Positions 5,423-23,347 of a stretch of 64,000 nucleotides of DNA are shown here, piece after piece. The notes under the pieces were generated by a model, which saw only the letters and a list, made by a program, of their open reading frames with translations, ran no database searches and was not told the DNA's origin. The stretch spans positions 186,001-250,000 of the IMG/VR virus record IMGVR_UViG_3300022698_000267; one strand, 5' to 3'. The translations under genes were made by a program, and so were the position numbers. How positions within the stretch are numbered: the first letter of the stretch is position 1; every line of letters starts with the position of its first letter.

Positions 5423-5455
5423 AACATTGATAAATTACTTCATTGGAGGTTTTGA

Positions 5456-7551: not shown

Positions 7552-7616
7552 ATTATAGATATTCATAATGAAAGATTCATACGATTTGGATAACTAGGAA
7601 AAGAGGTTACTGAAAC

Positions 7617-8600: not shown

Positions 8601-9957
8601 AATGGCAGAATTAAAAATAGAGGTTGTTGATCCAGTTATTTGTAAGTTGCATGGAGATCAGAAGTCTATTAGATCTTGCATGCGTTACGAATCCGATTAT
8701 TGGGTTAGAGGACCAAAGAGAAATTACAGAAAAGCAAAAGTTCGATATGCTATTGTTCGAAAGAAGTTTCATACTGGATTACTTCCTAGAGTTCTTGCAT
8801 ATTGTAAAAGAAATAATATTCCTATTGAAGTAGAGGCTGATGATTGGCATTTAAAACCAGATAATCCTGAACCATTTCTTCCTGGAATTACCTTTCGACC
8901 AGATCAATTAGAATCTATACATGCAGCTGTAAAGCATCAAAGGGGTTTAATCATTGCTCCAACCGGTTCTGGAAAAACCATTGTAGCTTTTGGTATTTCT
9001 TCAATGTTTCCAGATGCCAGGATTTTGGTTTTATGTCATAACAAATCAATCATTAGACAAACGTTTAAAAAAGCTGCAAAATATAATTTTGATGATATTT
9101 CTCTTTTTGGTGGTGGCAGTAGGGATATTAGTGGTAAGATTGCTTTTGGAACTATTCAAACCCTCACTAATATGGATCCAAAAGATTATGGAGCAGAATT
9201 CGATATTGTAATAATTGACGAGTGTCATCATGTTGCTCCAGATGGTCAATATGAGAATGTGCTTTCTAAAATGTTAGCTCCAATTCGAATTGGTTTTACA
9301 GCTACTAGACCAAAGGATCCTCTTAGAGAATTGGTTTTAGAAGGTCTTACTGGTCCAATAATCGGTGAATTAACTATTCAGGAGGGAATAGAATTGAATA
9401 TCTTGGCACATCCAACAATAACTTTAGTTCCAGTTCCTTTTAATAGAACTCTAGATGATAAGTGTCGATCCTATCAAGATTATTATCAAAGATGCATTGT
9501 TAGTAATAGGGCTAGAAACAGACTTATCGTTAACGCGGCAAATTCTAGAGTTGAACAGGGAAAAAGTGTTCTTATTATGATAAAGGAATTGCTTCAGGGT
9601 GATAATTTAATTGCAATGGCTAAGAATTTATATGGGATGAACATTGCTTTTGTACAAGGTGCTACAGAAGATGATGCAAGGGAGGAACTTCAGGAAGCTT
9701 TAAATGCTAAAGAAATAAAATGTGTGATAAGCAGTGCTGTTTGGCGTGAAGGTATTGATATTCCATCTTTGAATTCTGTAATCTATGCATCTGGAGGAAG
9801 AAGTGATACAATGACTCTTCAGATCATTGGTCGTGGACTTAGAAGAACTGATGAGAAGGATCAAGTGGAGATTGTTGATTTTTTAGACTCCTACCGCTAT
9901 CTTTCAGCTCATACTGTCGATAGAATAAAGACTTATGTTGAGTCTGGCTGGCTTTAA
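8593..9957 (+). CDS. uvsW: SF2 DEAD/DEAH helicase (UvsW-like)
   Basis: APTGSGKT, DECHH, TAT, EGIDIP and QIIGRGLR motifs. Confidence 0.9.
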   Translation: MGEMAELKIEVVDPVICKLHGDQKSIRSCMRYESDYWVRGPKRNYRKAKVRYAIVRKKFHTGLLPRVLAYCKRNNIPIEVEADDWHLKPDNPEPFLPGITFRPDQLESIHAAVKHQRGLIIAPTGSGKTIVAFGISSMFPDARILVLCHNKSIIRQTFKKAAKYNFDDISLFGGGSRDISGKIAFGTIQTLTNMDPKDYGAEFDIVIIDECHHVAPDGQYENVLSKMLAPIRIGFTATRPKDPLRELVLEGLTGPIIGELTIQEGIELNILAHPTITLVPVPFNRTLDDKCRSYQDYYQRCIVSNRARNRLIVNAANSRVEQGKSVLIMIKELLQGDNLIAMAKNLYGMNIAFVQGATEDDAREELQEALNAKEIKCVISSAVWREGIDIPSLNSVIYASGGRSDTMTLQIIGRGLRRTDEKDQVEIVDFLDSYRYLSAHTVDRIKTYVESGWL

Positions 9958-10003: not shown

Positions 10004-10921
10004 ATGCTAGAATTCTTTGATGTTTATTCGTACTTAAACGATAGATCTATAGACTACAGTGAAAGTGGAACTAACACCTCTTTTGGTTGGGTCAATATCG
10101 AGTGTCCATTCCCATATTGTGATGATCATTCAAATCATCTTGGAATAAATTTGGAATCCAAAGTTTTTCATTGTTGGAAATGTGGAACAAAAGGAGGCAT
10201 AACCAAATTAATACAAGAATTAGAGTCTTGTTCTTATAAACAGGCAAGTAGAATTGTTGAAGAATTTCAAGACATTGATTCTATAGCTTCATACTCGAAG
10301 TCAAGAAAAGAAGCAACAGTTCCAAGCAGATCCAATTTTATATATCCACCGAAAGGTTGTGTAAAAGAATTTCCAGAAGTGCATTTGCAATATCTACGAA
10401 GTAGGGATTTTGATCCATCTATTATTATTCCAAAATATGAGTTAATGGCTTGTCATACTGCTGGTGATTTTAAATTTAGAATCATCATCCCAATTATAGA
10501 AGATGGTGAGGTTGTTAATTTTACAACCAGAACTGTTATAAAGGATATGGAGCCAAGATATAAAATGGCTTCTATCAATAAGTACAATCCTATTACAGAC
10601 ATTTACGATTTGCTTTACAATTTTGATTCAGTACAAGAAAGAGCTTTTATTTTAGAGGGTCCTACAGATGTCTGGCGAATGGGAGATGGAAGTACTTGTA
10701 CATTCGGTACAGCATTAAGCAAACCACAGATTTTAAAACTAGCATCTTTAGAATTAGCAGTTTTAATTTTCGATTCTGAAGCAGAAGAAGATGCAAGAAG
10801 ACTTGAATATCAAATTCGACCCTTTACTGATACAGAAATAATCTTGTTAGATCCTGGATTAGATCCAGCACAGTTGAGACAAGATGAAGTTGAAGAGTTG
10901 AAAAGGGAATTTTCAATATGA
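10004..10921 (+). CDS. dnaG: DNA primase (Zn finger + TOPRIM)
   Basis: CPFPYC..H...CWKC zinc domain; EGPTD and FDSE TOPRIM motifs. Confidence 0.88.
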   Translation: MLEFFDVYSYLNDRSIDYSESGTNTSFGWVNIECPFPYCDDHSNHLGINLESKVFHCWKCGTKGGITKLIQELESCSYKQASRIVEEFQDIDSIASYSKSRKEATVPSRSNFIYPPKGCVKEFPEVHLQYLRSRDFDPSIIIPKYELMACHTAGDFKFRIIIPIIEDGEVVNFTTRTVIKDMEPRYKMASINKYNPITDIYDLLYNFDSVQERAFILEGPTDVWRMGDGSTCTFGTALSKPQILKLASLELAVLIFDSEAEEDARRLEYQIRPFTDTEIILLDPGLDPAQLRQDEVEELKREFSI

Positions 10922-12534
10922 GTGATGCCATTAGCCGTTTTAGGAGAGGTAAGAAAGGTAATGTAGATACAGACTTATCTTCTGAAAAATTAATGTTATC
11001 TGCTGCAATACTCTCCACTAATTTTTGTAGAACTGTCTTTAGAAAGTATAAACCTGAATTTATACAAAATGAATTCATTAGAGATAGTATGAATTGGTGT
11101 ATGGACTATTTTCGTGAATTCGATAAAGCACCAAAATCCGATATTGAAAGAGTATTTGAGTATAAATCTTCTAAGTTAGATCCATCTAGTAAAGAACTTA
11201 TTGAATATCTTCTATTTTCCATATCACAGGATTCTAAGGGTTTAGTTGTAAGCGATCATAACTATGTTCTAAAAGAAACTTTAAAGTATTTCAGGAAAAG
11301 ACACTTAGATATAGCTTTGATGAAGTCTAGAGCTCTTTTAGATTCTGGAAATGTAGATAAGGCAGTAGAGTCTATTGCTGGTGAAAATTTTCAGGAAGAC
11401 CTAGCTTACGAAGGAAGATTAGAAGATATTTTTGACAGAGAAAGTATAGAATCTGCTTGGTCTAAGGTTGATACTGAGCACGTTTTTGCTTTTAGTGGAG
11501 GAGCAGCAACATTAAATAAACTAGTTGGTTACATTAAGAAGGGTTGGTTGATGGCTTTTTTAGCTCCTCCAAAGAGGGGTAAGACCAGTTGGTTATTAGA
11601 AACTGCCTGTCAAGCAATGTCTTATGGTGCAAAAGTCCTTTTTGTTAGTTTGGAAATGAATTCCAAAGCAATAAGACAGAGATTCTATTCCAGATTTTTG
11701 AATAAACCTTACGGTTCATTCCAAAGTGAAAGAAATTTTAAAACAGGTCCTGGAGGAGAACTGCTTTCTAGGATTCCATATATAGACTGTGAACACAATA
11801 AAAGTAATTCTTGTAAAAGAGAGGAAAGGACAAAATATAAGACAGAACATTACCCATCTGATGATGTGGAAGATACTGAAGCGCCTTGCTTTGGTTGCAT
11901 CTACAGTCCAGAGTCTGATTTTTCTTTTAGTGTTGAGTCCATATGGGTTGAAGTTAATTCAAATTCTTATGAAGCAGATCACAGAAGCTTGTTTGCTATA
12001 GGAAGGCATCTAAAAAGGTATCTTAGATTAGTCACTTATCCCAGTTTTCTTGGTGGGATTGATGATATACAACAGGATTTAGAGGTTGCAAAATCTCAAG
12101 GGTTTCGACCTGATGTGATTATAATAGATTATGCCGATATTCTAAAGCCACCAGGATTTGGAGGTGGTGATCCAAGACATAATCTGGATTTAATTTGGAA
12201 GACTCTAAAAGGTTTGGCGGAGGCAACTAATTCTGTAGTTATAACTGCTAGTCAGACTAATAGAAAGGCTGTAGAGGAGAGGAGAATAGGACAAAAGCAT
12301 GTTGCTGAAGATTTTAGAAAACTCGCACATGTTGATGTTTTTATGGCTATAAATCAAAACGATTTTGAAAAGGATATTGGAATAAAAAGAATTAATGTTA
12401 TAGCCCATAGGCATAAAGATTTTTCTGAGAATGTAGAGTTGAATTTAACTGAAGCTTTACATATGGGTCAGGTTTGTGTTAGTTCCATTATTCCACCCAG
12501 AAAGAAGAAAAAGGAGGAAGATGAAGATGAGTAA
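10918..12534 (+). CDS. dnaB: Replicative DnaB-like helicase with a Cys-rich insertion
   Basis: APPKRGKT Walker A, SLEM, IIIDYAD, ASQTNR. Confidence 0.9.
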   Translation: MSDAISRFRRGKKGNVDTDLSSEKLMLSAAILSTNFCRTVFRKYKPEFIQNEFIRDSMNWCMDYFREFDKAPKSDIERVFEYKSSKLDPSSKELIEYLLFSISQDSKGLVVSDHNYVLKETLKYFRKRHLDIALMKSRALLDSGNVDKAVESIAGENFQEDLAYEGRLEDIFDRESIESAWSKVDTEHVFAFSGGAATLNKLVGYIKKGWLMAFLAPPKRGKTSWLLETACQAMSYGAKVLFVSLEMNSKAIRQRFYSRFLNKPYGSFQSERNFKTGPGGELLSRIPYIDCEHNKSNSCKREERTKYKTEHYPSDDVEDTEAPCFGCIYSPESDFSFSVESIWVEVNSNSYEADHRSLFAIGRHLKRYLRLVTYPSFLGGIDDIQQDLEVAKSQGFRPDVIIIDYADILKPPGFGGGDPRHNLDLIWKTLKGLAEATNSVVITASQTNRKAVEERRIGQKHVAEDFRKLAHVDVFMAINQNDFEKDIGIKRINVIAHRHKDFSENVELNLTEALHMGQVCVSSIIPPRKKKKEEDEDE

Positions 12535-13486
12535 ATCCATATGTCCGATTTGCGAGGAGAGATTCAGTGATGTTCTGTCCCATATACTTTCAACAGATGA
12601 TCAAGCACATGCAGATATTATAGCTAGTGTGCATGAGGTCATAGATGCTTTGGTTAACACCAGAACATATGTTGGTGAAGTGGTAGAAATACTTAAGGCC
12701 AAAGATCCAAGATTTTGGTTTGTAACATATGGTTTTGTTGCAAATTATGTGAAGAAAAAGATTGGTTCAGACAGAGTTCATGGCTTTTTGGATAGTGCAA
12801 AAGAAAAACAACCAACTCCAGAATTTCTTGCAACGATGGAAGAAAGTGTAGAAGATTTGAAAGCTTTGTGGATACCTGGAAGTTATGCTAAAGTATTATC
12901 TCAGATTTTGTCAGCAACTAGTGCTAATCCCACTGCTTATCTTTCACATTTCCAAGATTTGAGTTTTTGTAGTATTTGTGGATCTAATAAAGATGTTAGA
13001 GCAACATTTGTCGATGAGGATAGCCAGAATATCCTAATTTCAAACATGGAACCTTTATGTTCCGATTGTAAATCATTAGAAATTTTAGAAGGCGTCCTTC
13101 CATTTGCTACAATAAGTAAAGATTTTTCTTTTGCTGGAGCTCATAAACTTCCAGACTATGATGGCGATTGTAACTTCTTGCATGGACATGAATGGAAATT
13201 TACGGTATCTGTTCGAAAAAGAATTAATCCTATCACCGGAATGATAATTGATTTCAAGAAATTAAAAGCAATTGTTAATGCGAATATTGTTGATCTTCTT
13301 GACCATTCTTATCTCAATGACTTTTTTCCAAATCCTACTGCTGAGAACATTGTGGTATGGATGTGGGAGAGGTTGATGTTTGATGGTTTACTTAAAGGGT
13401 TGGAATCTATTAGACTATGGGAAAGTCCAACTAGTTTTATAACACTTACTAAACAAGATATGTTATCAGTCTTTGGGAGGATGTAA
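12527..13486 (+). CDS. queD: 6-carboxytetrahydropterin synthase QueD fused to N-terminal Zn-finger/degenerate HNH domains; start moved to ATG 12527
   Basis: FAGAHKL, CNFLHGH, DHSYLN, PTAENI and WESPTS in the C-terminal ~130 aa; AGGAGG RBS. Confidence 0.9.
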   Translation: MSKSICPICEERFSDVLSHILSTDDQAHADIIASVHEVIDALVNTRTYVGEVVEILKAKDPRFWFVTYGFVANYVKKKIGSDRVHGFLDSAKEKQPTPEFLATMEESVEDLKALWIPGSYAKVLSQILSATSANPTAYLSHFQDLSFCSICGSNKDVRATFVDEDSQNILISNMEPLCSDCKSLEILEGVLPFATISKDFSFAGAHKLPDYDGDCNFLHGHEWKFTVSVRKRINPITGMIIDFKKLKAIVNANIVDLLDHSYLNDFFPNPTAENIVVWMWERLMFDGLLKGLESIRLWESPTSFITLTKQDMLSVFGRM

Positions 13487-14160
13487 TGTTTTCACTTTAT
13501 AGCATTTTTGATTCAATCGATGGAGAAGTAAATGCTTTTCATCAAGGAGTTCTTACCACTTTTATTAGATTTTCTCAGTGTAATTTATCATGTAAGTGGT
13601 GTGATACACAATATGCCGCAAAGAGATCAGATGGTATGGAAATTAGTTTGTCTAATCTTTTAGAGGATCTCTTTGCTTCCAGAGGGGAAAAATTAAAGAA
13701 AGTGACAATTACTGGTGGTGAGCCTTTACTACAAGAGGAGTTATCTACTCTATTGCAGGAATTAGTTGCTAGAGATATTAAAGTTTCAATAGAAACTAAT
13801 GGAACTTTAGAACCGATTCAACAATTCGTAGGTATTCCAGAAGTTTGTTGGGTCTATGATTTTAAGTTGAAGAATTCTGGGCAGCGTAATAGAATGAATT
13901 TAAATGCTTTTGGATTCCTTTCGAAAAATGATTTTGTAAAGTTTGTTGTTGGGAGTTCTGATGATGTTAAAGAAGCTATGGATGTAGGAAAGGTTCTAAG
14001 AGAAAATGGTTGTGAAGCAAAGTTTGCATTTTCTCCAGTACATGACGAATTTACTCCACAACAGCTTTTAAGGGAGATTGAAATTTATGGTACTGGAGAT
14101 GAAATTATAAACCTCCAATTACATAAGTACATTTGGGGAATAACGAAGGAAGAACACTAG
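13486..14160 (+). CDS. queE: 7-carboxy-7-deazaguanine synthase QueE (radical SAM)
   Basis: SIDGE, CNLSCKWCDT, TGGEP, ETNG, QLHKYIW. Confidence 0.93.
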   Translation: MFSLYSIFDSIDGEVNAFHQGVLTTFIRFSQCNLSCKWCDTQYAAKRSDGMEISLSNLLEDLFASRGEKLKKVTITGGEPLLQEELSTLLQELVARDIKVSIETNGTLEPIQQFVGIPEVCWVYDFKLKNSGQRNRMNLNAFGFLSKNDFVKFVVGSSDDVKEAMDVGKVLRENGCEAKFAFSPVHDEFTPQQLLREIEIYGTGDEIINLQLHKYIWGITKEEH

Positions 14161-14177
14161 AGGGGAGGAATTTAAAA

Positions 14178-14885
14178 ATGGTTAGAGCACTGATTCGAGA
14201 ATCTTATCAAGCTTTATTGGAAACAAAATTGGTTCCAGGTGTAGAATCGAAAGAATTTGATATGGAGAACGATGATTTACAGAAGCTATGTGACAGTTTT
14301 CTAGACTCTGTTGAATTGGTTCCTATTGAAAAGGAACAATTAATTCCACCAAAAGTTATTGATTTATACAATGACATTGTGGATGGAATAGTTGTGGTTA
14401 CTGAAACTTCTACGGCTGCTGAGCCATCAAAAGAGGAAGAGAAGAAGCCAGAGGTATCAGAGGAGGATGAAAAGTTGATCTCTTCTGCTCAAGAGAAAGT
14501 TGCTAAAGAACTTCTTGAAGATAAAGATGGATCAAAACCTGAACCAAAGAAGGCTGAATCAAAGAAGGCTGAATCAAAACCTGAACCAAAGAAGGCTGAA
14601 TCAAAACCTGAACCAAAGAAGGCTGAATCCGATTCTGACACTGGTATTAATATTTTTGGTAGAAGAAAGAATAGCAAGTACGGATTCATTGATGAAAAGC
14701 TTTTAGAAGGCATTACAATGGATAGTTTGGTTTCTATAGTTTCCGAGAAATTTGATATGGATCCAAAGAAAACGTTGGGAACTATAAAAGCTCATATTCG
14801 AAATGTCACAAATAAAAGAAACGAAGCCGATTGTTTGGAGGAAGAGGATGGAATTCTTCGTTTCGTCCAGAAGGAGGCTTCATAA
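14178..14885 (+). CDS. Acidic hypothetical protein with KPEPKKAES repeats; start moved to ATG 14178
   Basis: GGAGG RBS; low-complexity linker and helical C-terminus. Confidence 0.7.
   Translation: MVRALIRESYQALLETKLVPGVESKEFDMENDDLQKLCDSFLDSVELVPIEKEQLIPPKVIDLYNDIVDGIVVVTETSTAAEPSKEEEKKPEVSEEDEKLISSAQEKVAKELLEDKDGSKPEPKKAESKKAESKPEPKKAESKPEPKKAESDSDTGINIFGRRKNSKYGFIDEKLLEGITMDSLVSIVSEKFDMDPKKTLGTIKAHIRNVTNKRNEADCLEEEDGILRFVQKEAS
14532..14630 (+). repeat. Coding tandem repeat (27-bp unit tcaaaacctgaaccaaagaaggctgaa plus partial copies)
   Basis: Seen directly; encodes SKPEPKKAE repeats. Confidence 0.9.
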
Positions 14886-15688
14886 TGGATGAGTTGATGG
14901 ACGTACAAAAAACTAAACCTATTCATCAAATACCAATAGATTTTGTTGGGATTGGTGGATTCAAACTTCCAATTTGTGTTAGCACAAAGGCAGGACCATA
15001 TCAAAATACCATTGCAGATGTTACTGTGTATGGAAATCTTCCAGCAGACAAAAAAGGGATTGATATGAGTAGAATCCCAATAGCTATACAAAAGTTTTCT
15101 GGTCAAAGATTAGATGTCAGTGTAACGAATGAAGTGGCCGAACATATACGAAGAAAGTTGGAAGTAGATTTGTGTAAAGTGACTTACAAATTCCCTTATT
15201 TTCTACAAAAGATTGCACCTGTGAGTAGAGAGCCCGGAATAGTATCTTATGATGTAACATTTCATCTAATAAAGACAGAAGACTCTTCTGATTTTTATAT
15301 GTCTATAGTTGTCTTTGGCACTAGTTTGTGTCCATGTAGTAAAGAAATCAGTGAAAATTCGGCGCATAATCAAAGGGTTCGGGTTAAAGTAGGTTTAAAA
15401 CCATTTGCTGATCAATTCATATGGATAGAGGATATTATAACTCTTGTTGAGGCTTCATGCTCTGGACAAATGTACAGTGTTTTAAAAAGAGTGGATGAAA
15501 AGCATGTCACTGAAACAATGTACGATAATCCAAAATTTGTAGAAGATATTATACGGGAATGTGCTTTCCGACTATCTTTAGAAAAGTCAGTGGAAAAGTA
15601 CAATATTACTGTAAGTTCTCAAGAAAGTATTCATCAACATGATGCAATTGCTATTGTGTCTGGAAAGAATGGGGTCGATAATGACTGA
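14885..15688 (+). CDS. folE2: GTP cyclohydrolase I type FolE2; start moved to ATG 14885
   Basis: KGIDMSR, SLCPCSKEIS..SAHNQR, KRVDE, PKFVEDIIR, ESIHQHDA. Confidence 0.93.
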   Translation: MDELMDVQKTKPIHQIPIDFVGIGGFKLPICVSTKAGPYQNTIADVTVYGNLPADKKGIDMSRIPIAIQKFSGQRLDVSVTNEVAEHIRRKLEVDLCKVTYKFPYFLQKIAPVSREPGIVSYDVTFHLIKTEDSSDFYMSIVVFGTSLCPCSKEISENSAHNQRVRVKVGLKPFADQFIWIEDIITLVEASCSGQMYSVLKRVDEKHVTETMYDNPKFVEDIIRECAFRLSLEKSVEKYNITVSSQESIHQHDAIAIVSGKNGVDND

Positions 15689-16310
15689 ATGGAAAAGTGA
15701 GGTTCGAATTGAAAATTCACTTCCTGTACAAGGTTTGAAACTTCATGTTGGTTGTGGCAGAAGAATTCTGGAAGACTATATAAATATTGATATAACCAGA
15801 ACGCTTTTGAAAGACTTAGATCTTTTCCTTTCCGATTCTGAAGTCAATTACATAAATCAAAGTTTTATTGAATGCTCATCTGATGATATGCCTCTACCAG
15901 ACGAATGTGCTGCTGAGATTCTATGTGAACATACTCTAGAACATCAAACTCCAGAAGAGATATATGAAACTCTATGGGAGTTTGCCAGAGTATTAAAGCC
16001 TGATGGTATACTAACTGTTTCTGGTCCAAATTTCGCACACTTTGCTAAGACATTCGATAAGTACAAAAACAACTATCTGGATTCCATTGATGTTATGTAT
16101 GCAATTCTTTGTAATACCAGAAATGTTAAAAGAATGTCACCCCATAGAAGTTTATTGTGGGCAGAGTTTCTGGTTCCATTGGTTAGAAGGAGTGGTTTTA
16201 CTATCCTGGAGGTTATAGAAAATGATGAACTGAAAATTATAGCTTCTAGAGATAGTGATCGAGTTGTTAGGGTCCTTAATGTCCAAGGAGGTGAAAAAGA
16301 TGAAAGTTAG
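15681..16310 (+). CDS. Class I SAM-dependent methyltransferase (type 11-like); start moved to ATG 15681
   Basis: LHVGCG motif I, INIDI, EHTLEH, RVLKPDG. Confidence 0.85.
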   Translation: MTEWKSEVRIENSLPVQGLKLHVGCGRRILEDYINIDITRTLLKDLDLFLSDSEVNYINQSFIECSSDDMPLPDECAAEILCEHTLEHQTPEEIYETLWEFARVLKPDGILTVSGPNFAHFAKTFDKYKNNYLDSIDVMYAILCNTRNVKRMSPHRSLLWAEFLVPLVRRSGFTILEVIENDELKIIASRDSDRVVRVLNVQGGEKDES

Positions 16311-17262
16311 AAACTTTGCAAAAACCATAATGACAAATTTTAGTTATGGTGTACAAGAGATTTCAACTGATATTGATTTAGATCAAGCTTCGGAAATCTT
16401 AAATTGTATGATTGATATTAAGGAAAAACCGGAAGGTTTTGTTCCAAAATTGAATACTATGGATTTGAAGAGTCTGGGGTTGAATGAACGTGCTGACTTT
16501 GTTCTTCTGCTAACTGGAGGGTTAGATAGTACACTAGCCTACTTTCGTCTACTAGATGAAGGTTACAAATCTATTTTTCCAATCTACGTAGATTTTGGAC
16601 ACCCTTATGCAGAGAAAGAAATTAAGGCTTTGCATAAATTGAAAATAGATTTTTTCTATTACAAAGAAATTGTTCCAGTTCGATATGATGGTCCTTGGGA
16701 ACATATTATCCCAGCCAGAAATTTATATCTTCTTGGAATAGCATCTGAAATAGCCAGAGACGGTGGTGAAATTTGGATATCTTCCGTTGCCGGAGAGACA
16801 CCAGAATATGGTGGAGACAAATCTTTGACCTTTTACAAACAAGCTCATGATTTGATAAAAACAACTTCTGGGAAAGATATTTCCATAAAATGTATGAATG
16901 AAAGAACAAAGTCCGGTTGGGTTTCATGGTTTTTAAATGAATGCCTGATGGATGAATTGACATACGAAGATAAGGTGGGAATTTTAAAAACCACAGTTTC
17001 TTGTTTTTCAGGGCACAGTCATTTGAATTGTGGGAAATGTAGAGCTTGTCTTAGAAAATGGATATGTCTAACATACAATGATGTAGATTGTGACGATATG
17101 TTTGAAGTTCATCCATATCATGGTGCTGGTGAGTTAGTACAAGAGTACAAAGACAGAATGAGCGTTGCTTTACAAAACAGCGATTTCTCATACTTTACTA
17201 AAAATAGGTGTAAAGAGACTTTGTCGGTTTTCAAAAGATTTGAAGAAGGACTTCTTTCTTAA
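16300..17262 (+). CDS. queC: 7-cyano-7-deazaguanine synthase QueC with N-terminal extension; start moved to ATG 16300
   Basis: TGGLDST PP-loop, IPARN, and SC...CGKCRAC Zn site. Confidence 0.85.
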   Translation: MKVRNFAKTIMTNFSYGVQEISTDIDLDQASEILNCMIDIKEKPEGFVPKLNTMDLKSLGLNERADFVLLLTGGLDSTLAYFRLLDEGYKSIFPIYVDFGHPYAEKEIKALHKLKIDFFYYKEIVPVRYDGPWEHIIPARNLYLLGIASEIARDGGEIWISSVAGETPEYGGDKSLTFYKQAHDLIKTTSGKDISIKCMNERTKSGWVSWFLNECLMDELTYEDKVGILKTTVSCFSGHSHLNCGKCRACLRKWICLTYNDVDCDDMFEVHPYHGAGELVQEYKDRMSVALQNSDFSYFTKNRCKETLSVFKRFEEGLLS

Positions 17263-17288
17263 AATAAAAGATTTGGAGGGTTTTTCCT

Positions 17289-18419
17289 ATGAGTAAGAAA
17301 ATAAAAATTGCAATTATGGGCCTTGGAAACTGTTCGTGTTCTCTCATCCAAGGCATTCACTACTATTCGAAAGATGAACATATGCCAAAAAATCCAGAAG
17401 ATCCAAAAGATTTTGTACCTGGATTAATGCATTGGGATTTGGCTGGTTACAAACCAGGTGACATTGAAGTGGTTGCAGCATTTGATGTTGACAGACGAAA
17501 GGTTGGTCGTGACGTATCGGAAGCTATTTTTCAAAGACCTAATTGCACGAAGGTTTTTGAGCCAGATATTCCTGAGTATGGGGTTACAGTTCATATGGGT
17601 GTAATTTTGGATGGAGTTGCTCCACATATGGCAAATTATCCAGAAGATTGTGCATTTTCCACGGCTAATGAAATACAACCTTCTAAAGAGCAGATAGTTG
17701 AGATTCTAAAAAAATCTGAAGCTGATATTGTCGTAAATTACCTTCCAGTTGGTTCCCAAAAAGCTGTAGAATTCTATGCTGAATGTACATTAGAAGCTGG
17801 TTGTGGTTTTGTGAACTGCATACCAGTTTTTATTGCAAGTGATCCAGAATGGGAAGAAAAGTTTGCTAAAGCAAATTTGCCCATTGTTGGTGACGATATC
17901 AAGTCTCAGGTTGGAGCTACGATTGTACATAGAATTCTTACAGATCTTTTCAAGAAACGTGGTGTTCCTTTGGACACGACTTACCAGATAAATTTTGGTG
18001 GAAATACAGACTTCTTAAATATGTTGAATCGAGATAGACTGGTTAGCAAGAAAATCTCGAAGACAGAAGCTGTACAATGTCAAGCAAAACACAGATTGTC
18101 CGATAGAAATATTCATGTTGGACCAAGCGATTATATTCCATGGTTAGATGACAATAAGATCTGTAATATTAAGATGAATGGTCGTCTATTTGGGGATGTT
18201 CCAATGGATATCGAACTTCGGCTTTCAGTGGAAGATTCACCAAATTCTGCTGGTGTGGTAATCGATGCTGTTCGTTGCTGTAAATTGGCTCTGGACAGGG
18301 AAACAGGTGGATGTGTGTATCCAGCTAGTGCTTATTTCATGAAACATCCACCCAAACAATATCAGGACGATGTTGCTTACCGATTGGTAGAATCGTTCAT
18401 TATAGGAGGAACAGAGTGA
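17289..18419 (+). CDS. ino1: myo-inositol-1-phosphate synthase
   Basis: GLGNC, NYLPVGS, GDDIKSQVGATIVHR, GGNTDFLNM, SKKISKT, EDSPNSAG. Confidence 0.96.
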   Translation: MSKKIKIAIMGLGNCSCSLIQGIHYYSKDEHMPKNPEDPKDFVPGLMHWDLAGYKPGDIEVVAAFDVDRRKVGRDVSEAIFQRPNCTKVFEPDIPEYGVTVHMGVILDGVAPHMANYPEDCAFSTANEIQPSKEQIVEILKKSEADIVVNYLPVGSQKAVEFYAECTLEAGCGFVNCIPVFIASDPEWEEKFAKANLPIVGDDIKSQVGATIVHRILTDLFKKRGVPLDTTYQINFGGNTDFLNMLNRDRLVSKKISKTEAVQCQAKHRLSDRNIHVGPSDYIPWLDDNKICNIKMNGRLFGDVPMDIELRLSVEDSPNSAGVVIDAVRCCKLALDRETGGCVYPASAYFMKHPPKQYQDDVAYRLVESFIIGGTE

Positions 18420-19183
18420 ACTTTTTCTTAGATAGTGGTGCCTTTTCTGCTTTTACTCAAGGTTCAGCCATAGATCTAGATTCATACATCTCTTTTATCA
18501 AACAAAATGAAAAGGATGTGACAGTTTACGCAAATTTGGATGTTATTGGTGACGTCGAGGCCTCTTGGGAAAATCAACGATATATGGAAAGCAAAGGATT
18601 AACTCCATTGCCAGTTTTTCACGTTGAAGATCCAATAGAATATCTATACAAATGTATGGATTATGATTATTTCTGTCTTGGTGGTATGGCTTCTGCTACA
18701 ATGGACCTTCGAATTAACTTTTTAGATAAATGCTGGTATATTATCTGTGATACACCAGACAACATGCCAAAAAACAAAGTGCATGGTTTTGGTATGACCG
18801 CACATAAATTGATGTTTCGATATCCATGGTATTCTGTAGATAGTACTAGTTGGTCGCAGACTGCAGGATTTGGAAACATTTTTGTTCCAAGAAAAACGGT
18901 GAATGCTGAATTTGATTTCACAGAACCTCCTTTCAAAATATCTGTTTCAGATGAAAGTCCCAGTAAATCCGAATACGATATTCATATTGAAACTGCAACT
19001 GATGCTGCTAGAGAACACATCTTGAAATACTTTGATTTGATAGGTATAACTGAAATTGGTGTGAAAACCAGTCATTGGAATAGACGATATGTGAATGTCA
19101 CTTTCTTTACTGGTGTTGCTAAGGCACTAACTTGGCCAAGGCCATTCAAACCAAAGTTGATTAATAAAGGCTTTGGTCTCTAG
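18416..19183 (+). CDS. dpdA: TGT-fold transglycosylase, DpdA-like (deazaguanine insertion); lacks the usual N-terminus
   Basis: FLDSGAFS, NLDVIGD, PLPVFH, CLGG, HGFG and PWYSVDSTSW; located in the que cluster. Confidence 0.7.
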   Translation: MNFFLDSGAFSAFTQGSAIDLDSYISFIKQNEKDVTVYANLDVIGDVEASWENQRYMESKGLTPLPVFHVEDPIEYLYKCMDYDYFCLGGMASATMDLRINFLDKCWYIICDTPDNMPKNKVHGFGMTAHKLMFRYPWYSVDSTSWSQTAGFGNIFVPRKTVNAEFDFTEPPFKISVSDESPSKSEYDIHIETATDAAREHILKYFDLIGITEIGVKTSHWNRRYVNVTFFTGVAKALTWPRPFKPKLINKGFGL

Positions 19184-19195
19184 GAGGAATTTCAA

Positions 19196-19435
19196 ATGAT
19201 TATGTATTTTGTAACGGATTTTAATCCAAAGGATGCCGATTTATTTCATAGAGCCGGATCTGAAGACATTCTGGTTTCTTACTGGGTTTTGCAAAGTGGA
19301 AGGGATCCTGAGGGGAAAATCAAGGCCTTTTATGATCAGCTACATGGGTTAAAAGAACCAAAATTGCAATACACTGAAACTGGGGAAGTAATAAAGTCTA
19401 AAAGGGGGAATTCAGATGAAATCGAAGACGATTGA
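19196..19435 (+). CDS. Small protein, possibly the detached N-terminal segment of the TGT-like enzyme
   Basis: MYFV....L..AG...ILVSYW pattern; GGAGG RBS. Confidence 0.5.
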   Translation: MIMYFVTDFNPKDADLFHRAGSEDILVSYWVLQSGRDPEGKIKAFYDQLHGLKEPKLQYTETGEVIKSKRGNSDEIEDD

Positions 19436-19595
19436 AGAAATTCGTAAAGAGATTCGTGAGCTTGAAGAATTAAGAGATTCTGGAAATCCTCCTTCTGATG
19501 AAATTTTTGAAAAATTGGATTCTTTATACAATCAAGAACTGAAACTGTTGGCTACACATATTGATAAGAAGGAGGATAGTTCTAATGAAAGTTAA
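19416..19595 (+). CDS. Small coiled-coil protein (59 aa; below the ORF-track cutoff)
   Basis: Hand-translated MKSKTIEEIRKEIRELEEL...SSNES*; fills the gap and overlaps both neighbours. Confidence 0.6.
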   Translation: MKSKTIEEIRKEIRELEELRDSGNPPSDEIFEKLDSLYNQELKLLATHIDKKEDSSNES

Positions 19596-20616
19596 GGACT
19601 TGAAAAGCATATGTCAGAAGTTACGTCCTGGTTTAGATAGACAGAAGTCTTTGATAGAGCATTTCAGACATATCTGTTTTACTGGAAAACGAATTATTAC
19701 ATTCAATGAAAGAATCTGTGTTGCATATCCATTTGAAACAAGTTTTTCATGTTCGGTTTCTGGACACGATTTTATTAATATGATTTCTAATCTTCCTCAG
19801 AATGAAGACATAGTTATTCGAATGGTCAAAGATATGCTGCGAATTCGTGGTGAAGGCACTAGTATTAAGATGTCTACTTACAATGACCAGAAACTTTCAG
19901 GTATATATGAAGATGCTTTCAATAAAGATTTTGAATGGCTGCCTCTTCCAGAAGATTTTATGGAAGCAATTAACCTATGTCATTTCACAGTTGCCAAAGA
20001 TTTAACCAGGCAATATCTTAACTACATCAAAATATCTGCTTCTGATGTAACAAGTTCTGATAATTTAAGAATTTCTAAATATAACTTAAAATCTGCAGTA
20101 GAAAAAGACTTTTTTATCCCAGGTAACGTTTGTAAACCTCTGCTACAGTACAAGGTTACTTCTTTTTGTATATCCGAGCCTTGGTTAGGATTTAAGACCG
20201 ACGATGATATTGAATTCTTTTGCAGAACTTCTGATATTGAATATCCAGATGTTTCTGCTCTATTTGAATTCGAAGGTGAAACTTTTAATCTGCCCACCGA
20301 ATTAAAAGCCATAGTTGAATCATTAACAGTTGTAACAGAGGAGGATTTTTTAACGGACAGACACATGACGGTGACTATAAAGGACAATATAGTATCCTGT
20401 TTTGTCGAGAAAGAGACTGTGTCGGCAAATAGGTGGGTTGAAACCGATATTAACAGGGAATTGTCATTTGTAATTAACCCAGTATTCTTCAATGAAATAT
20501 TGGAGAAAACCCGAACCATAAAGATTTCAGAAGGGAGAGCTCTCTTTATGGCGGGTAATTTCAATCATCTTCTAGCGCTTCCGGTTAAGAGTAAAGGAGA
20601 AAGTAATGATTCTTAG
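19585..20616 (+). CDS. DNA polymerase sliding clamp (beta-clamp-like); start moved to ATG 19585
   Basis: ~340 aa, alternating beta/alpha pattern, SSDNLRIS and EYPDVSALF segments typical of DnaN-like clamps; lies next to pol and clamp loader. Confidence 0.65.
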   Translation: MKVKDLKSICQKLRPGLDRQKSLIEHFRHICFTGKRIITFNERICVAYPFETSFSCSVSGHDFINMISNLPQNEDIVIRMVKDMLRIRGEGTSIKMSTYNDQKLSGIYEDAFNKDFEWLPLPEDFMEAINLCHFTVAKDLTRQYLNYIKISASDVTSSDNLRISKYNLKSAVEKDFFIPGNVCKPLLQYKVTSFCISEPWLGFKTDDDIEFFCRTSDIEYPDVSALFEFEGETFNLPTELKAIVESLTVVTEEDFLTDRHMTVTIKDNIVSCFVEKETVSANRWVETDINRELSFVINPVFFNEILEKTRTIKISEGRALFMAGNFNHLLALPVKSKGESNDS

Positions 20617-23347
20617 TACTGAAGGTTTCTTCTTTAAAGAACCAACCTTGGCGGAGAAAAAAGCGGCTAGGAAGAGGGATTACAGTAAAGGTAATTCATC
20701 CAAGCCAAAGAAAAAAAGAGCAGCTTCTGGAAGTACAAAAACTGTTGATCAAAAATTGAAAGATAATCCTTGTGAAGTTTGTGGTCTTTACAAGAAAGGA
20801 TGTGAATCTCCATTCATGCAGTATACAGGAGAAGGAAGAACAAAAGCCCTTATTATTGGGGAAGCTCCAGGTGCTGCAGAAGACGCAAAGTGGAAAAAAT
20901 TGGGATATGATGTTCCAACTCAGTTTATTGGTGATGCTGGACAACTTCTTAGAAAGGAACTTCGTCTTCTTGGGTATAATCTGGATAAAGATTTTTGGAA
21001 GGTAAATGCTTGTAATTGTAGACCTCCTGGGAATGCCACACCAACTACCAAACAATTGAAAGCCTGTTGGAATTTCATAGTAGAACCAACCATTAAAAAG
21101 TTGAAACCAAAGGTCATTTTTCTAATGGGAGGAGCAGCAGTTGCTCAATACTTTGCAAAAATCTCTGGAAGTAAGAATGTTCTTGGTATAAATAGATGGA
21201 GAAGGCTTTGTATTCCAGATTTGGATTACGATGTTTGGGTAGTTCCTCTATTTCATCCGTCTTTCATTTTAAGGAAAAGAAATGATGCAAATCTAAAATC
21301 GGTTTATCAAAGAGATTTAAAATTTGCAATTTCTGCCATTTCTAAACCAAAGATTGAAAGAATTGATTATGAATCTAAAGTAGAAATTGTAAAAGATTTT
21401 GATAGAGTCTGTGAGGTTTTAATAGAAGCTAGAAAACAGAAGTTTATAGTTTTCGATTTTGAAACCTCTGGAAAGAAACCTTATGATTCTAAACATAGAA
21501 TATGGTCTATGTCTTTAGCTTGGAACAGAGAAAAGGCCTATTCTTTTGCTTATCAATATCCTGGATGTTGGACAGATGAGCAATTAAAAACAATTCAGAT
21601 ATTAGTTGCTGAATTATTAAATGATGAAAATGTTTTAAAAGGTGCACACAACCTGAAGTTCGAGCATCTTTGGTCTTGTAAATTCTTTACGGAACCGAAG
21701 AATTGGATTTGGTGTACTATGTTAACTGCTCATATTTTAGATAATAGGGGTGGTATTAGTGGATTAAAATTTCAGGTTTTCTATAGATATGGAATTCCAG
21801 ATTATGGAGCTAGTCTACATCAACTTATGATAAAGAAGGATCAGAATGGATTAAATCTATTGTATAAAGCTGATCTGGATGAATTGCTATTATATGGTGG
21901 ATTAGACAGTTTGTTCACTTTCATGCTGTTTGAGGATCAAAAATTAGAGCTCAGACGTTATAAGAATACGTTAAATATGGCTCATCCATTTTTTCATAAA
22001 GGCATTCTGGCTTTAGCAAGGGCTGAAATGAATGGATTTAATGTATCCATGGATTTTTATGAAGAAAAAGATGGAGAGCTTGCTGACCAGATTGCAGAAA
22101 TAGAGCATCGATTAGTTAATGGAGATTATGGTTCCAAATTTAGAGAGATAGAAGGAAAGGATATAAATCCCAGATCTACTTCCGATATTAAAAAGTTATT
22201 CTTTGATATTCTAAATATGAAACCTTTGAGAATGACTGACAAAGGGAATCCTGCTTTAGATAAATCTTGTATGGAAGAATGGAATCTACCATTTACCAAT
22301 GACATTCTACAGTTGAGGATGTTGGAGAAGATAAAAGGGACATATCTGGCTCAGTTTAAAAGAGAGGTTAATGAAGATGGAAGAATACACCCAAACTTTA
22401 ATCTTCACATTCCAAGGACTTATAGATCTAGCTCCAATGAACCAAATTTTCAGAACATTCCGGTTCGCAGCAAATTAGCAAAGGAAGTTACTAGAGGAGG
22501 AATAATTCCAAGTCCTGGTAACAGACTAATGGAAGGTGACTTTGGTAGCCTTGAAGTTAGAATTTCTGCTTGTTATCATAAAGATCCCAATATGTTAACG
22601 TACATCAATGATCCCACTACTGATATGCATAGGGATAGTGCAGCTGATATTTGGCTGCTAGAAACAGATGAAGTTTCAAAAGATATTCGATTTTATGCTA
22701 AAAATGGTTGGGTTTTCCCACAGTTCTATGGTGATTGGTATGATTCTTGTGCAAGGGGATTATGGGGTAATTGCTTAGAATTACAAACGGAAAGAAATAT
22801 AAGTTTATATGATCATATTAGGTCTAAAGGAATTAAAAATCTGGAAGATTTTATTGCTCATTGTAAAGATGTGGAAGACAAATTTTGGAACGTTCGTTTT
22901 AAAGTCTATAAAAAATGGAAGGATAAGATTAATAAGCAGTATAGAGATCAGGGTTACATAGAAACATACTTTGGTTTTCGTCTCGGTGGATACATGGGGA
23001 AGAAGGATGTTACTAATTATCCTATACAAAGCAGTGCTTTCCATTGTCTTCTATGGTCATTCATTAGGGCAGATGAAATAGCTCGTAAAGAAAGATGGAA
23101 GAGTAAGTTGATTGGTCAAATTCATGATAGTATTATAGCCGATTTGCATCCTGATGAAACGTATCATGTCATTGACACTTTGAATAATATTATGAATGTT
23201 CAAATGCGAGAAGAGCTTCCCTGGATTATTGTTCCTTTGGAAGTGGACTTTGAACTAACTGGAATAGATCAACCATGGTCAACGAAGGACGATTTTGATC
23301 TATCGCAATTATCAATTAAAAAAGAGGAAGAGGAGATGATGCTATGA
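20606..23347 (+). CDS. polA: Family A DNA polymerase with N-terminal family-4 uracil-DNA glycosylase domain and 3'-5' exonuclease
   Basis: UDG: CEVC, GEAPG, CRPPGN, HPS; exo: DFETSG, HNLKFE; pol: DFGSLEVR, KNG..FPQFYG, QIHDS. Confidence 0.95.
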   Translation: MILSTEGFFFKEPTLAEKKAARKRDYSKGNSSKPKKKRAASGSTKTVDQKLKDNPCEVCGLYKKGCESPFMQYTGEGRTKALIIGEAPGAAEDAKWKKLGYDVPTQFIGDAGQLLRKELRLLGYNLDKDFWKVNACNCRPPGNATPTTKQLKACWNFIVEPTIKKLKPKVIFLMGGAAVAQYFAKISGSKNVLGINRWRRLCIPDLDYDVWVVPLFHPSFILRKRNDANLKSVYQRDLKFAISAISKPKIERIDYESKVEIVKDFDRVCEVLIEARKQKFIVFDFETSGKKPYDSKHRIWSMSLAWNREKAYSFAYQYPGCWTDEQLKTIQILVAELLNDENVLKGAHNLKFEHLWSCKFFTEPKNWIWCTMLTAHILDNRGGISGLKFQVFYRYGIPDYGASLHQLMIKKDQNGLNLLYKADLDELLLYGGLDSLFTFMLFEDQKLELRRYKNTLNMAHPFFHKGILALARAEMNGFNVSMDFYEEKDGELADQIAEIEHRLVNGDYGSKFREIEGKDINPRSTSDIKKLFFDILNMKPLRMTDKGNPALDKSCMEEWNLPFTNDILQLRMLEKIKGTYLAQFKREVNEDGRIHPNFNLHIPRTYRSSSNEPNFQNIPVRSKLAKEVTRGGIIPSPGNRLMEGDFGSLEVRISACYHKDPNMLTYINDPTTDMHRDSAADIWLLETDEVSKDIRFYAKNGWVFPQFYGDWYDSCARGLWGNCLELQTERNISLYDHIRSKGIKNLEDFIAHCKDVEDKFWNVRFKVYKKWKDKINKQYRDQGYIETYFGFRLGGYMGKKDVTNYPIQSSAFHCLLWSFIRADEIARKERWKSKLIGQIHDSIIADLHPDETYHVIDTLNNIMNVQMREELPWIIVPLEVDFELTGIDQPWSTKDDFDLSQLSIKKEEEEMML

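Follow-up and report, generated by a model that had tools for sequence, protein, structure and literature searches.

A 7-deazaguanine gene cluster with an inositol-3-phosphate synthase gene in the replication operon of an uncultivated jumbo phage

Gene content of the locus

The sequence analysed (the window) is a stretch of 64,000 nucleotides, positions 186,001 to 250,000 of the IMG/VR virus record IMGVR_UViG_3300022698_000267, which belongs to an uncultivated jumbo phage. Nine genes at window positions 12527-19435, all on the + strand and tightly packed or overlapping, lie between a DnaB-like helicase gene and the genes for a sliding clamp and a UDG-PolA protein (Table 1). A preliminary description, based on the sequence alone, had placed queD, queE, an unassigned ORF, folE2, a methyltransferase gene, queC, ino1 and a dpdA-like gene between these flanks, and this observation was confirmed, with three corrections: the queD gene encodes a fusion protein, the queC gene is not canonical, and the 79-aa ORF that follows dpdA probably encodes a DpdA subunit.

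Table 1. Genes of the cluster and its flanks, in window coordinates, with the supporting evidence. L014 and L024 are two diverged relatives.
Position	Strand	Assignment	Evidence
10918..12534	+	DnaB-like replicative helicase (upstream flank); DnaB_C match split in two by a Cys-rich insertion	PF03796, 2 stretches; same upstream neighbour in L024
12527..13486	+	Fusion protein, 319 aa: residues ~1-195 Cys-rich, HNH/zinc-ribbon-like domain; residues ~195-319 (QueD match only in the last ~115 aa) QueD (6-carboxytetrahydropterin synthase)	PF01242 103 bits; TIGR03367 91.3 bits (cut-off 89.25), on residues 213-300 of the 336-aa ORF 12476-13486; L024 homologue 33% identical
13486..14160	+	QueE-type radical SAM enzyme (CDG synthase)	PF04055; TIGR03963 159 bits (best hit); phrog_2076 E 1.8e-38; CxxxCxxC motif in the translation
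14133..14885	+	Unknown protein, 250 aa (235 aa from the ATG at 14178), K/E/P-rich low-complexity middle	No Pfam, NCBIfam, PHROG or PADLOC family; conserved in L014 and L024, 35-47% identical
14885..15688	+	FolE2 (GTP cyclohydrolase IB)	PF02649 254 bits; NF010200 231.8 bits (cut-off 215); FolE1-type enzyme at this position in L024
15681..16310	+	Class I SAM methyltransferase of the small-molecule type (proposed decorating enzyme)	PF08241 (Methyltransf_11)
16300..17262	+	Divergent QueC-family PP-loop ATPase with a ~75-aa N-terminal extension (proposed CDG-carboxylate-activating enzyme)	PF06508 45.6 bits; model pLDDT 84
17289..18419	+	myo-Inositol-3-phosphate synthase (ino1)	PF01658 116 bits; TIGR03450 445 bits; 397 bits to M. 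tuberculosis Ino1 (PDB 1GR0)
18416..19183	+	DpdA1-type DNA guanine transglycosylase, large piece (255 aa)	phrog_887 E 1.3e-50; 35-39% identical to DpdA of 9g- and CAjan-like phages
19196..19435	+	79-aa protein predicted to bind DpdA by strand pairing; probable small DpdA subunit	Predicted complex, ipSAE 0.90; separate ORF after DpdA in L014 (79 aa) and L024 (67 aa)
19561..20616	+	Sliding clamp (DnaN-like), downstream flank	TIGR00663 37.5 bits; phrog_947 E 1.8e-28
20606..23347	+	UDG-3'-5' exonuclease-family A DNA polymerase fusion, downstream flank	PF03167, PF01612 and PF00476

The FolE2 and QueD assignments both exceed the NCBIfam equivalog cut-offs. For the QueE-type enzyme the radical SAM motif is present and the best hits are all QueE models, but the TIGR03963 score is below the equivalog cut-off of 260, which leaves the equivalog assignment undecided. 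A search of the Atlas with the Cys-rich domain of the QueD fusion gave only weak HNH leads, but included a viral cluster of 98 HNH+PTPS proteins, and for the unknown 250-aa protein only viral unknowns and weak HTH leads were found. The methyltransferase had only 4 relatives among 5.8e9 proteins, three of them in the same type of cluster, and the best PDB matches of its model were small-molecule, sugar-O- and Trm9-type methyltransferases, with no DNA methyltransferase among the top 50 hits. The ino1 product matches PDB 1GR0 over its full length (residues 2-373), is 64-69% identical to annotated cellular enzymes and has catalytic blocks that are invariant across 8 phage homologues, although its TIGR03450 score is below the actinobacterial equivalog cut-off of 638.

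A tblastn search with the DpdA-like protein hit 243 phage records, including 9g-like and CAjan-like phages (E 1e-37 to 1e-46) and, more weakly, Rosebush; 9g, CAjan and Rosebush are known to carry deazaguanines in their DNA. No tree against DpdA2, DpdA3 or DpdA4 was built, and base exchange in double-stranded DNA was not assayed. For the predicted complex between DpdA and the 79-aa protein the best control reached an ipSAE of 0.01, the runs shared at least 72% of contacts and the partner pLDDT was at least 69; the mark was reached by 51 of 78 solved complexes and 2 of 108 mismatched pairs.

Absence of preQ1, archaeosine and thymidine hypermodification enzymes

The preliminary description had noted no queF or arcS in view, and had put forward a profile search of the rest of the genome for QueF, ArcS and DpdC/L/M/N as a way to check its reading. 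When the whole 273,563-bp genome, rated 97% complete by CheckV, was searched, no QueF, ArcS (DUF5591), Gat-QueC (GATase), second QueD paralogue (DpdL), DUF3109 (DpdM) or formyltransferase (DpdN) was found. There was no match to PF14489, PF01702, PF17884, PF11307, PF00551 or PF13537, and only one PTPS and one QueC-family gene were present. Nothing in the genome would lead to preQ1, G+, DG, mdPreQ1 or fdPreQ1. With respect to the bacterial Dpd island (DpdA-K), PADLOC models hit none of the nine cluster proteins apart from a generic QueC model, and the rest of the genome was not scanned for DpdC, so that these data do not settle whether island components such as DpdB, DpdC and the restriction genes occur elsewhere in it. 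The genome contains no PF18724 (aaDT) match at E<=0.1 and only a borderline thymidylate-synthase-like ORF, and no recognisable inositol-phosphate phosphatase, CDP-alcohol transferase or GT2 glycosyltransferase was found.

A divergent QueC-family enzyme

The QueC-like protein was compared with the published signature of canonical QueC, the preQ0 synthase (cluster 1 of PMC13329287). It retains the ATP loop (SGGxDS; TGGLDS at 88-93), the VPxRN motif (IPARN at 152-156), the conserved Lys (T218-K219) and the C(x)8CxxCxxC zinc site (C250/C259/C262/C265). In contrast, the YxQxHxxE and YPDC substrate motifs and the essential residues Y35, Y131 and Y189 are missing. Y35 is replaced by F114, Q37 is H116 in the window although it is Q in most of the subfamily, H39 is replaced by Y118 with a one-residue insertion before E122, and Y189 is replaced by F251. 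YPDC is replaced by GGDKS, with no aromatic residue at the Y131 position and an invariant Lys in place of the Cys. The best folds matched by the model were QatC, Cap9 and QueC.

The protein belongs to a large viral subfamily (341 representatives at E<=1e-30), the neighbours of which vary between ino1, methyltransferases and glycosyltransferases, and one member (P0223) is a fusion of the QueC-like protein with a glycosyltransferase. There are also plain clusters that carry the same subfamily without any decorating gene (the loci L113, L020 and L021, and Bacteroides phage BS162P1).

Viral ino1 genes and conservation of the cluster

Among 81 ino1 loci in IMG/VR, 54 have a PF18724 aaDT-like gene, of the type found in thymidine hypermodification, within about 1-2.6 kb, and in one clade of these loci 5-hmdU DNA kinase and thymidylate-synthase-like genes lie alongside. 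Another 8 have this QueC-like gene within 0.9-2.3 kb, so that viral ino1 is embedded in DNA hypermodification clusters in 62 of 81 loci. The remaining 19 loci showed no hypermodification gene, although many have short flanks, and given that the contigs sampled are related to each other the raw counts overstate independence. Since no aaDT is present in the genome of the window, its only hypermodification partner is the deazaguanine cluster.

The ino1 genes of the window, L014 and L024 sit in a clade with cellular enzymes (98% support), apart from the main phage clade, which indicated a separate capture from cells. The 12 deazaguanine-linked ino1 genes do not form one clade (AU test, p 1e-56; the group tested was named after a first tree had been seen), with at least 6 context switches, and on the QueC-like tree the linkage to ino1 changes at least 6 times. 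The module is under selection: L014 and L024 keep the order methyltransferase-QueC-ino1-DpdA-small ORF, and against L024 ino1 is 59%, DpdA 58% and the methyltransferase 51% identical, as compared with 29% for the clamp and 49% for PolA, whereas FolE2 is swapped for FolE1 in L024.

Comparison with known systems

In the phage DpdA1 systems (Escherichia phage CAjan, dPreQ0; Enterobacteria phage 9g, dG+) the GTP to CDG enzymes, a QueC-family enzyme and a DpdA1-type transglycosylase also sit in one cluster near replication genes, and insertion is post-replicative (PMC10516641). The present cluster differs in that FolE2 is used instead of FolE, QueD is fused to an HNH-like domain, the QueC-like enzyme lacks the two substrate motifs, DpdA is probably split into 255-aa and 79-aa proteins, ino1 and a class I methyltransferase are embedded in the cluster, and there is no Gat-QueC.

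In the Stenotrophomonas Menderavirus phages (Moby, Ps15, IME-SM1) and IMG/VR relatives such as the locus L009, ino1 lies inside a folE-queC-like-TGT-like-queE cluster between replication genes, and the QueC-like gene is of the same divergent subfamily. These are T4-like phages with a FolE1 and a 403-aa TGT-like protein of another subfamily, and their ino1 belongs to a different clade (45% identical), is followed by a small HAD-like phosphatase gene and has been treated in published descriptions as a stray bacterial gene (PMC9025141).

Cap9 (type IV CBASS) and QatC (QatABCD) are QueC-family ligases with a PP-loop and a zinc site that attach CDG, in an ATP-dependent manner, through its carboxyl to a nucleophile other than ammonia. 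They are bacterial defence proteins that modify a protein N-terminus, and QatC has its own motif set whereas Cap9 keeps YxDC; ligation by the phage enzyme was not assayed.

Thymidine hypermodification clusters (5-hmdU DNA kinase plus amino acid:DNA transferase, as in phages M6, ViI and SP10) share the logic of an activated base plus an imported nucleophile, but the window's cluster targets guanine rather than thymine, and an inositol-bearing thymidine has not been reported in the papers searched. In the DpdM/DpdN systems (mdPreQ1, fdPreQ1) an extra enzyme likewise decorates the deazaguanine side chain (PMC10516641), but those systems need QueF to make an amine and DpdM is a DUF3109 metalloprotein, whereas the methyltransferase found here has an ordinary class I fold.

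Interpretation

We interpret the stretch as one early, probably co-transcribed DNA-hypermodification module that points to an undescribed decorated base, a reading that we consider somewhat more likely than not. Comparison with about 100 other viral loci ties ino1 and the methyltransferase to DNA base hypermodification. Family membership indicates that FolE2, QueD and the QueE-type enzyme convert GTP to 7-carboxy-7-deazaguanine (CDG) and that ino1 converts glucose-6-phosphate to myo-inositol-3-phosphate, and homology to tested enzymes suggests that the DpdA1-type transglycosylase exchanges guanine in double-stranded phage DNA for the deazaguanine base after replication. The remaining steps are inferred, and no chemistry was measured. 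The QueC-family enzyme would activate the CDG carboxylate with ATP and, because its substrate pocket is remodelled, need not stop at, or even make, preQ0. In this view ino1 and the methyltransferase belong to the same pathway and provide an inositol-derived, possibly O-methylated, substituent on the deazaguanine, although no enzyme that would attach inositol was identified with any certainty. The most plausible attachment point is the C7 carboxyl or amide, in parallel with Cap9 and QatC, which conjugate CDG to amines, and the likely purpose is escape from host restriction and other DNA-targeting defences.

The interpretation given in the preliminary description is partly supported. Its claim of a complete preQ0 pathway is only safe as far as CDG, given that the last enzyme lacks two motifs that define canonical QueC, so that preQ0, ADG or a CDG conjugate are all possible. 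Its suggestion that the two unexplained enzymes define a new derivative is still an inference but is supported by the comparative evidence, that is, by ino1, the methyltransferase and DpdA being among the best conserved cluster genes in L014 and L024, by the hypermodification context of viral ino1 and by the repeated independent joining of ino1 to QueC-like/DpdA clusters. The proposed coupling to replication is not supported beyond co-location and probable co-transcription, and published work treats DpdA insertion as post-replicative (PMC10516641).

Alternative explanations

A possible, but in our view less likely, alternative is an ordinary dPreQ0 (or dADG) system, in which the QueC-like enzyme is just a fast-evolving phage QueC or the proposed ADG synthase QueC*, and ino1 and the methyltransferase are unrelated auxiliary metabolic genes that happen to lie in the early-gene region. 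This is compatible with the presence of all four core enzyme families plus DpdA and with the plain clusters described above, which suggest that the enzyme may simply make preQ0 or ADG. In addition, all DpdA enzymes tested so far insert preQ0, QueC* is a published idea (PMC10516641), and large phages often place metabolic genes in replication modules. However, random placement would rarely put ino1 so close to QueC-like genes in at least six separate lineages, including a separate capture from cells. The better conservation of ino1 and the methyltransferase than of the clamp, the location of ino1 beside a different base-hypermodification transferase in 54 other loci and the absence of substrate residues shown to be essential also speak against this explanation.

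It is unlikely that ino1 and the methyltransferase instead make a free small molecule, such as inositol or a methyl-inositol, that serves the infection in another way (as osmolyte, as lipid head-group, or by interference with host signalling or defence) and is merely co-regulated with DNA modification genes. The high identity to cellular enzymes makes ordinary inositol-3-phosphate the very probable product of ino1, in 50 of 81 viral loci a small HAD-like phosphatase follows ino1, which implies free inositol, and the methyltransferase fold resembles small-molecule enzymes. This explanation does not account for why the partner gene is so often a DNA base transferase (aaDT-like) or QueC-like/DpdA, nor for why the same slot next to QueC-like genes is filled by glycosyltransferases in other phages, once as a fusion.

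That the TGT-like protein acts on tRNA rather than DNA, which the preliminary description had named as an outcome that would overturn its reading, is very unlikely: the protein belongs to the TGT superfamily and many records annotate its homologues as queuine tRNA-ribosyltransferase, but the genome has no match to the tRNA-type TGT family PF01702, the window has no tRNA genes, and the closest relatives are the DpdA proteins of 9g- and CAjan-like phages and of Rosebush.

The sequence and its gene content

The window comprises bases 186001-250000 of a single IMG/VR virus record of 273,563 bp, which is rated 97% complete, and the GC content is about 0.34. A nucleotide search of the cluster against 50,697 phage records returned no match, and the DNA is therefore that of an uncultivated jumbo phage. 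No sequencing run was listed for the whole cluster and, for the QueC-like gene, one wetland metagenome was listed that holds only 5% of the sampled words. This metagenome holds a distant relative of one gene. As this metagenome is kept as contigs only, read-level evidence of modification was not examined.

The genes of the cluster all lie on the + strand with overlapping or nearly abutting ends. DnaB is located upstream, and a clamp, a UDG-PolA fusion and a clamp loader are located downstream. The gene list and gene order given in the preliminary description were thus confirmed. A PADLOC search gave nothing useful, and a genome search with phrog_887 as the query family returned no signal anywhere, including in the controls, and was given no weight. 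The Cys-rich N-terminal domain of the QueD protein, which is also present in the diverged relative L024 (an ENA contig), and the unknown 250-aa protein were both considered as candidate inositol transferases. However, the Atlas leads were weak (HNH/zinc ribbon and HTH, respectively) and no role was assigned, although a viral Atlas cluster of HNH+PTPS fusions exists.

Positions of the features discussed, in window coordinates unless another locus is named
Position	Strand	Feature	Support
10918-12534		DnaB-like helicase	DnaB_C match split in two by a ~120-residue Cys-rich insertion
12527-13486	+	319-aa protein, C-terminal third QueD	PF01242 103 bits; TIGR03367 above its cut-off
12527-13110	+	~195-aa Cys-rich N-terminal domain of the QueD protein	Weak HNH/zinc-ribbon resemblance
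13486-14160	+	QueE-type radical SAM enzyme	
14133-14885	+	Unknown protein with a low-complexity centre	
14885-15688	+	FolE2	Above the NCBIfam equivalog cut-off
15681-16310	+	Class I methyltransferase	Methyltransf_11
16300-17262	+	QueC-family protein	
17289-18419	+	ino1	
18416-19183	+	DpdA-like protein, 255 aa	phrog_887, E 1.3e-50
19196-19435	+	79-aa ORF	
20606-23347		UDG-exonuclease-PolA fusion polymerase	
31603-32556 and 39514-40689		PRPP synthetase and nicotinate/nicotinamide phosphoribosyltransferase-family gene	
34391-35575		RtcB RNA ligase gene	259 bits
37089-38240		Adenylosuccinate-synthetase-like gene	PF00709 136 bits
59679-60521 and 57381-59666	- (both)	Thymidylate-synthase-like ORF next to a ribonucleotide reductase with a TSCPD domain	24.3 bits for the thymidylate-synthase-like ORF, exactly at the Pfam cut-off, C-terminal part only
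L024:8384-9085 and L024:12041-12400		FolE1-type cyclohydrolase at the position of FolE2, and a DUF488-N3a gene between ino1 and dpdA	
L048:5271-8200		ino1 beside an aaDT-like gene (example from viral loci L042-L100)	PF18724
L035:9542-12347		ino1 beside an aaDT-like gene (example from viral loci L028-L046)	PF18724
L002 (Cr30) 4735-9260		ino1 beside an aaDT-like gene	PF18724
L105:1145-2656		503-aa protein P0223, QueC-like domain fused to a Gly_transf_sug glycosyltransferase	PF04488

The preliminary description had stated that no queF or arcS was in view, and had named searches of the rest of the genome for these and for the DpdL, DpdM and DpdN genes as a way of examining this. In the whole genome we found no QueF, tRNA-type TGT, ArcS domain, DUF3109 (DpdM), formyltransferase (DpdN type) or class II amidotransferase (Gat-QueC), and only one PTPS gene and one QueC-family gene, so that there is no DpdL paralogue. 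The preQ1, archaeosine, DG, mdPreQ1 and fdPreQ1 routes described by Cui, Hutinet and colleagues (PMC10516641) are therefore excluded.

Origin and conservation of ino1 and the module

The ino1 gene encodes a real inositol-3-phosphate synthase that was recently taken from cells. The protein aligned end to end with M. tuberculosis Ino1 (397 bits), whereas the five-membered cyclitol synthase Ari2 scored only 187 bits, and the possibility of an Ari2-like enzyme was rejected on this basis. It is 64-69% identical to enzymes annotated in Desulfobacterales, Marinimicrobia, Asgard archaea and others, one of which was checked and found to lie in an ordinary bacterial neighbourhood. In contrast, it is only 45% identical to the ino1 of Stenotrophomonas phage Moby and 40% identical to that of Caulobacter phage Cr30.

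The module is conserved in two diverged relatives, a Logan contig (L014) and L024, which have the same order of unknown ORF, GTP cyclohydrolase, methyltransferase, QueC-like, ino1, DpdA, small ORF, clamp and UDG-PolA. Against L024 the identities were 59% for ino1, 58% for DpdA, 51% for the methyltransferase, 45% for QueE, 44% for the QueC-like protein, 49% for PolA and 29% for the clamp. In L024, FolE2 has been replaced by a FolE1-type enzyme. Thus, ino1 and the methyltransferase are kept at least as strictly as the replisome genes, while a core step tolerated a non-orthologous swap.

Genomic context of viral ino1 genes

In Moby, ino1 lies inside a folE-ino1-small ORF-queC-like-TGT-like-queE cluster between the DNA polymerase/UvsX genes and the gp41 helicase. 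The possibility that ino1 always travels with que genes was rejected, since phages Cr30 and RP13 have ino1 but no QueC, and this observation led to the link with amino acid:DNA transferases (aaDT). In Cr30, ino1 is immediately preceded by a PF18724 amino acid:DNA transferase (179 bits) and a weak TET-associated glycosyltransferase match, and RP13 has a homologue of that transferase upstream. RP13 has been predicted by others to have T-hypermodified DNA (PMC13697223).

An IMG/VR scan with an ino1 alignment found 521 viral stretches, of which 81 loci were examined (the 80 kept plus locus L010). In 54 of these an aaDT-like gene was present within about 1-2.6 kb in one of two architectures, either aaDT-ino1-small HAD-like phosphatase or ino1-(HAD)-aaDT-like/dual-specificity phosphatase (DSPc)-5-hmdU DNA kinase-thymidylate-synthase-like. 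This widespread viral module suggests an inositol-bearing hypermodified thymidine. Another 8 loci have the QueC-like gene within 0.9-2.3 kb, mostly with folE, queE and a TGT/DpdA-like gene, and 19 showed neither, although many of these have short flanks. Fifty loci carry a small protein with DxDGV...ITGRS...EDDP motifs, which we read as a HAD-type phosphatase that would release free inositol; this is an inference from the motifs, as Pfam found nothing. The papers searched do not connect ino1 with phage DNA modification.

On an ino1 tree, the window and L014 (100% support) together with L024 fell in a clade with 15 cellular enzymes (98% support). The Moby-type and other deazaguanine-linked ino1 genes were scattered among aaDT-linked ones in a separate phage clade of 58 rows, and the viral locus L044 fell in a third clade. 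At least six switches between thymidine-type and deazaguanine-type context are needed, and forcing the 12 deazaguanine-linked genes into one clade cost 765 log-likelihood units (AU p 1e-56), with the reservation that this group was named after a first tree had been seen. These results indicated that recruitment was independent. A separate scan seeded on the QueC-like protein found more cases, including locus L110 with the window's own order of queC-like, ino1 and dpdA.

The QueC-like enzyme

A 2026 study of PF06508 (PMC13329287) defines canonical QueC by SGGxDS, YxQxHxxE, VPxRN, YPDC, a Lys and the zinc motif, and shows that Y35, R99, Y131 and Y189 are essential. A subfamily alignment and a profile alignment to QueC structures showed that the window protein keeps SGGxDS (as TGGLDS), VPxRN (as IPARN), the conserved Lys (as TK) and the C(x)8CxxCxxC motif. 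However, Y35 is replaced by Phe, H39 by Tyr with an inserted residue before E122, and Y189 by Phe, and YPDC is replaced by GGDKS, with no aromatic residue at Y131 and an invariant Lys in place of the Cys. The enzyme is therefore not canonical. The AlphaFold model (pLDDT 84) was closest to QatC and Cap9 and then to QueC. Both QatC and Cap9 are QueC-family ligases that join CDG through its carboxyl to a protein N-terminus, which shows that the fold can use nucleophiles other than ammonia.

A profile search of 1.84 billion representatives found 341 at E<=1e-30, so this is a large, uncharacterised clade in which every sampled context looks phage-like, while two further members that were looked up lie on 1.4-2-kb contigs with no usable context. 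The gene next to the QueC-like gene varies and is ino1 (the window group, loci L107, L109, L110 and L111, and the Moby group), a methyltransferase (L027/L108, L114, L009 and the window group) or a glycosyltransferase (three in L025 and two in L026). In P0223 of locus L105 the QueC-like domain is fused to the glycosyltransferase, and a Methyltransf_23 gene lies just upstream. On the QueC-like tree ino1 linkage changes at least six times among 25 members. Plain clusters also exist (locus L113 and Bacteroides phage BS162P1), so the enzyme can evidently supply DpdA with a base on its own.

The methyltransferase, DpdA and the 79-aa protein

The methyltransferase had only four relatives among 5.8 billion proteins, three of them in the same type of cluster, and a tblastn search against phages returned no match. 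Its model (pLDDT 72.5) matched small-molecule methyltransferases, among them the sugar O-methyltransferase AtmM and the carboxyl-methylating Trm9, and no DNA methyltransferase appeared among the top 50 hits. Methyltransferase-like ORFs of other class I families also recur beside ino1 in aaDT-type loci, though mostly with weak scores. This fits action on the shared inositol moiety, but a methyl ester on CDG is equally possible.

The transglycosylase is closest to DpdA of the 9g-like and CAjan-like coliphages and more distantly related to that of Rosebush, whereas a PDB sequence search with it gave no hit. The literature places the 9g enzyme in DpdA1 and reports dG+ in 9g DNA and dPreQ0 in CAjan DNA. 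The small ORF that follows dpdA is conserved in L014 and L024, and its 79-aa product is predicted with high confidence to bind DpdA by pairing strands with DpdA residues 1-9 and 138-144 (ipSAE 0.90 against a best control of 0.01). The runs shared at least 72% of contacts, partner pLDDT was at least 69, and in calibration the mark was reached by 51 of 78 solved complexes and 2 of 108 mismatched pairs. DpdA thus appears to be split and we read the 79-aa protein, as a prediction only, as a separate small subunit that completes the fold.

Interpretation and significance

The conversion of GTP to CDG and of glucose-6-phosphate to inositol-3-phosphate follow from membership of the enzymes in their families, and post-replicative base exchange by DpdA rests on homology. 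That the QueC-like enzyme activates CDG, and that ino1 and the methyltransferase decorate the resulting base, was inferred from context and motif loss. We are highly confident that this is a 7-deazaguanine DNA modification module, and consider it slightly more likely than not that ino1 and the methyltransferase act in it, whereas the specific idea of a CDG-inositol ester is unlikely. The preliminary interpretation, in which the two unexplained enzymes define a new derivative and the embedding among replisome genes suggests coupling to replication, was partly supported, coupling to replication not being supported beyond co-location and probable co-transcription. The genome lacks a recognisable inositol-phosphate phosphatase, CDP-alcohol transferase or GT2 enzyme, and either a host phosphatase is used or the phosphate ester itself is the substrate.

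A broader possibility, compatible with the data and judged somewhat less likely than not, is that myo-inositol is an unrecognised building block of phage DNA and that viral ino1 genes, usually with a small phosphatase, feed inositol to base-hypermodifying enzymes. In most loci the recipient would be aaDT-type transferases acting on 5-hydroxymethylpyrimidine, and in this phage and at least five other lineages it would be a divergent QueC-family ligase/DpdA system giving an inositol-bearing (here also methylated) 7-deazaguanine. The QueC-like subfamily would then be a general CDG-conjugating enzyme family, in which the neighbouring slot (ino1, methyltransferase or glycosyltransferase) would set the decoration.

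Eight 7-deazaguanine derivatives are known in phage DNA and none carries a cyclitol or sugar. If the inference holds, this locus and its relatives would add a new chemical class of DNA base, would assign a function to the puzzling "bacterial" ino1 genes of Menderavirus, Cr30 and RP13-type phages, and would extend the recently found ligase chemistry of QueC-family proteins from bacterial defence to phage counter-defence. Such bases affect restriction, CRISPR targeting, sequencing and amplification of environmental phage DNA, and their enzymes are candidates for DNA-labelling tools.

Placement among replisome genes and other genes of the window

Placement of the cluster among replisome genes recurs in L014, L024, L026, Moby and L009, which fits expression timed with replication but is not evidence for physical coupling. 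Promoter and terminator scans gave no signal above shuffled background inside the cluster, so no operon boundaries can be claimed. With regard to the downstream polymerase, a 2026 paper links one group of UDG-fused family A polymerases to phages with T-hypermodified DNA, including RP13, which also carries ino1; whether the window's polymerase belongs to that group was not tested.

Elsewhere in the window, the thymidylate-synthase-like ORF could be a divergent pyrimidine hydroxymethylase. The PRPP synthetase and the nicotinate/nicotinamide phosphoribosyltransferase-family gene together look like an NAD salvage pair, and an RtcB RNA ligase gene is also present. The adenylosuccinate-synthetase-like gene is about 31% identical to phage "PurA-like / 2-aminooxy adenylosuccinate synthetase" genes and could be PurA or a PurZ-type enzyme for 2-aminoadenine DNA.
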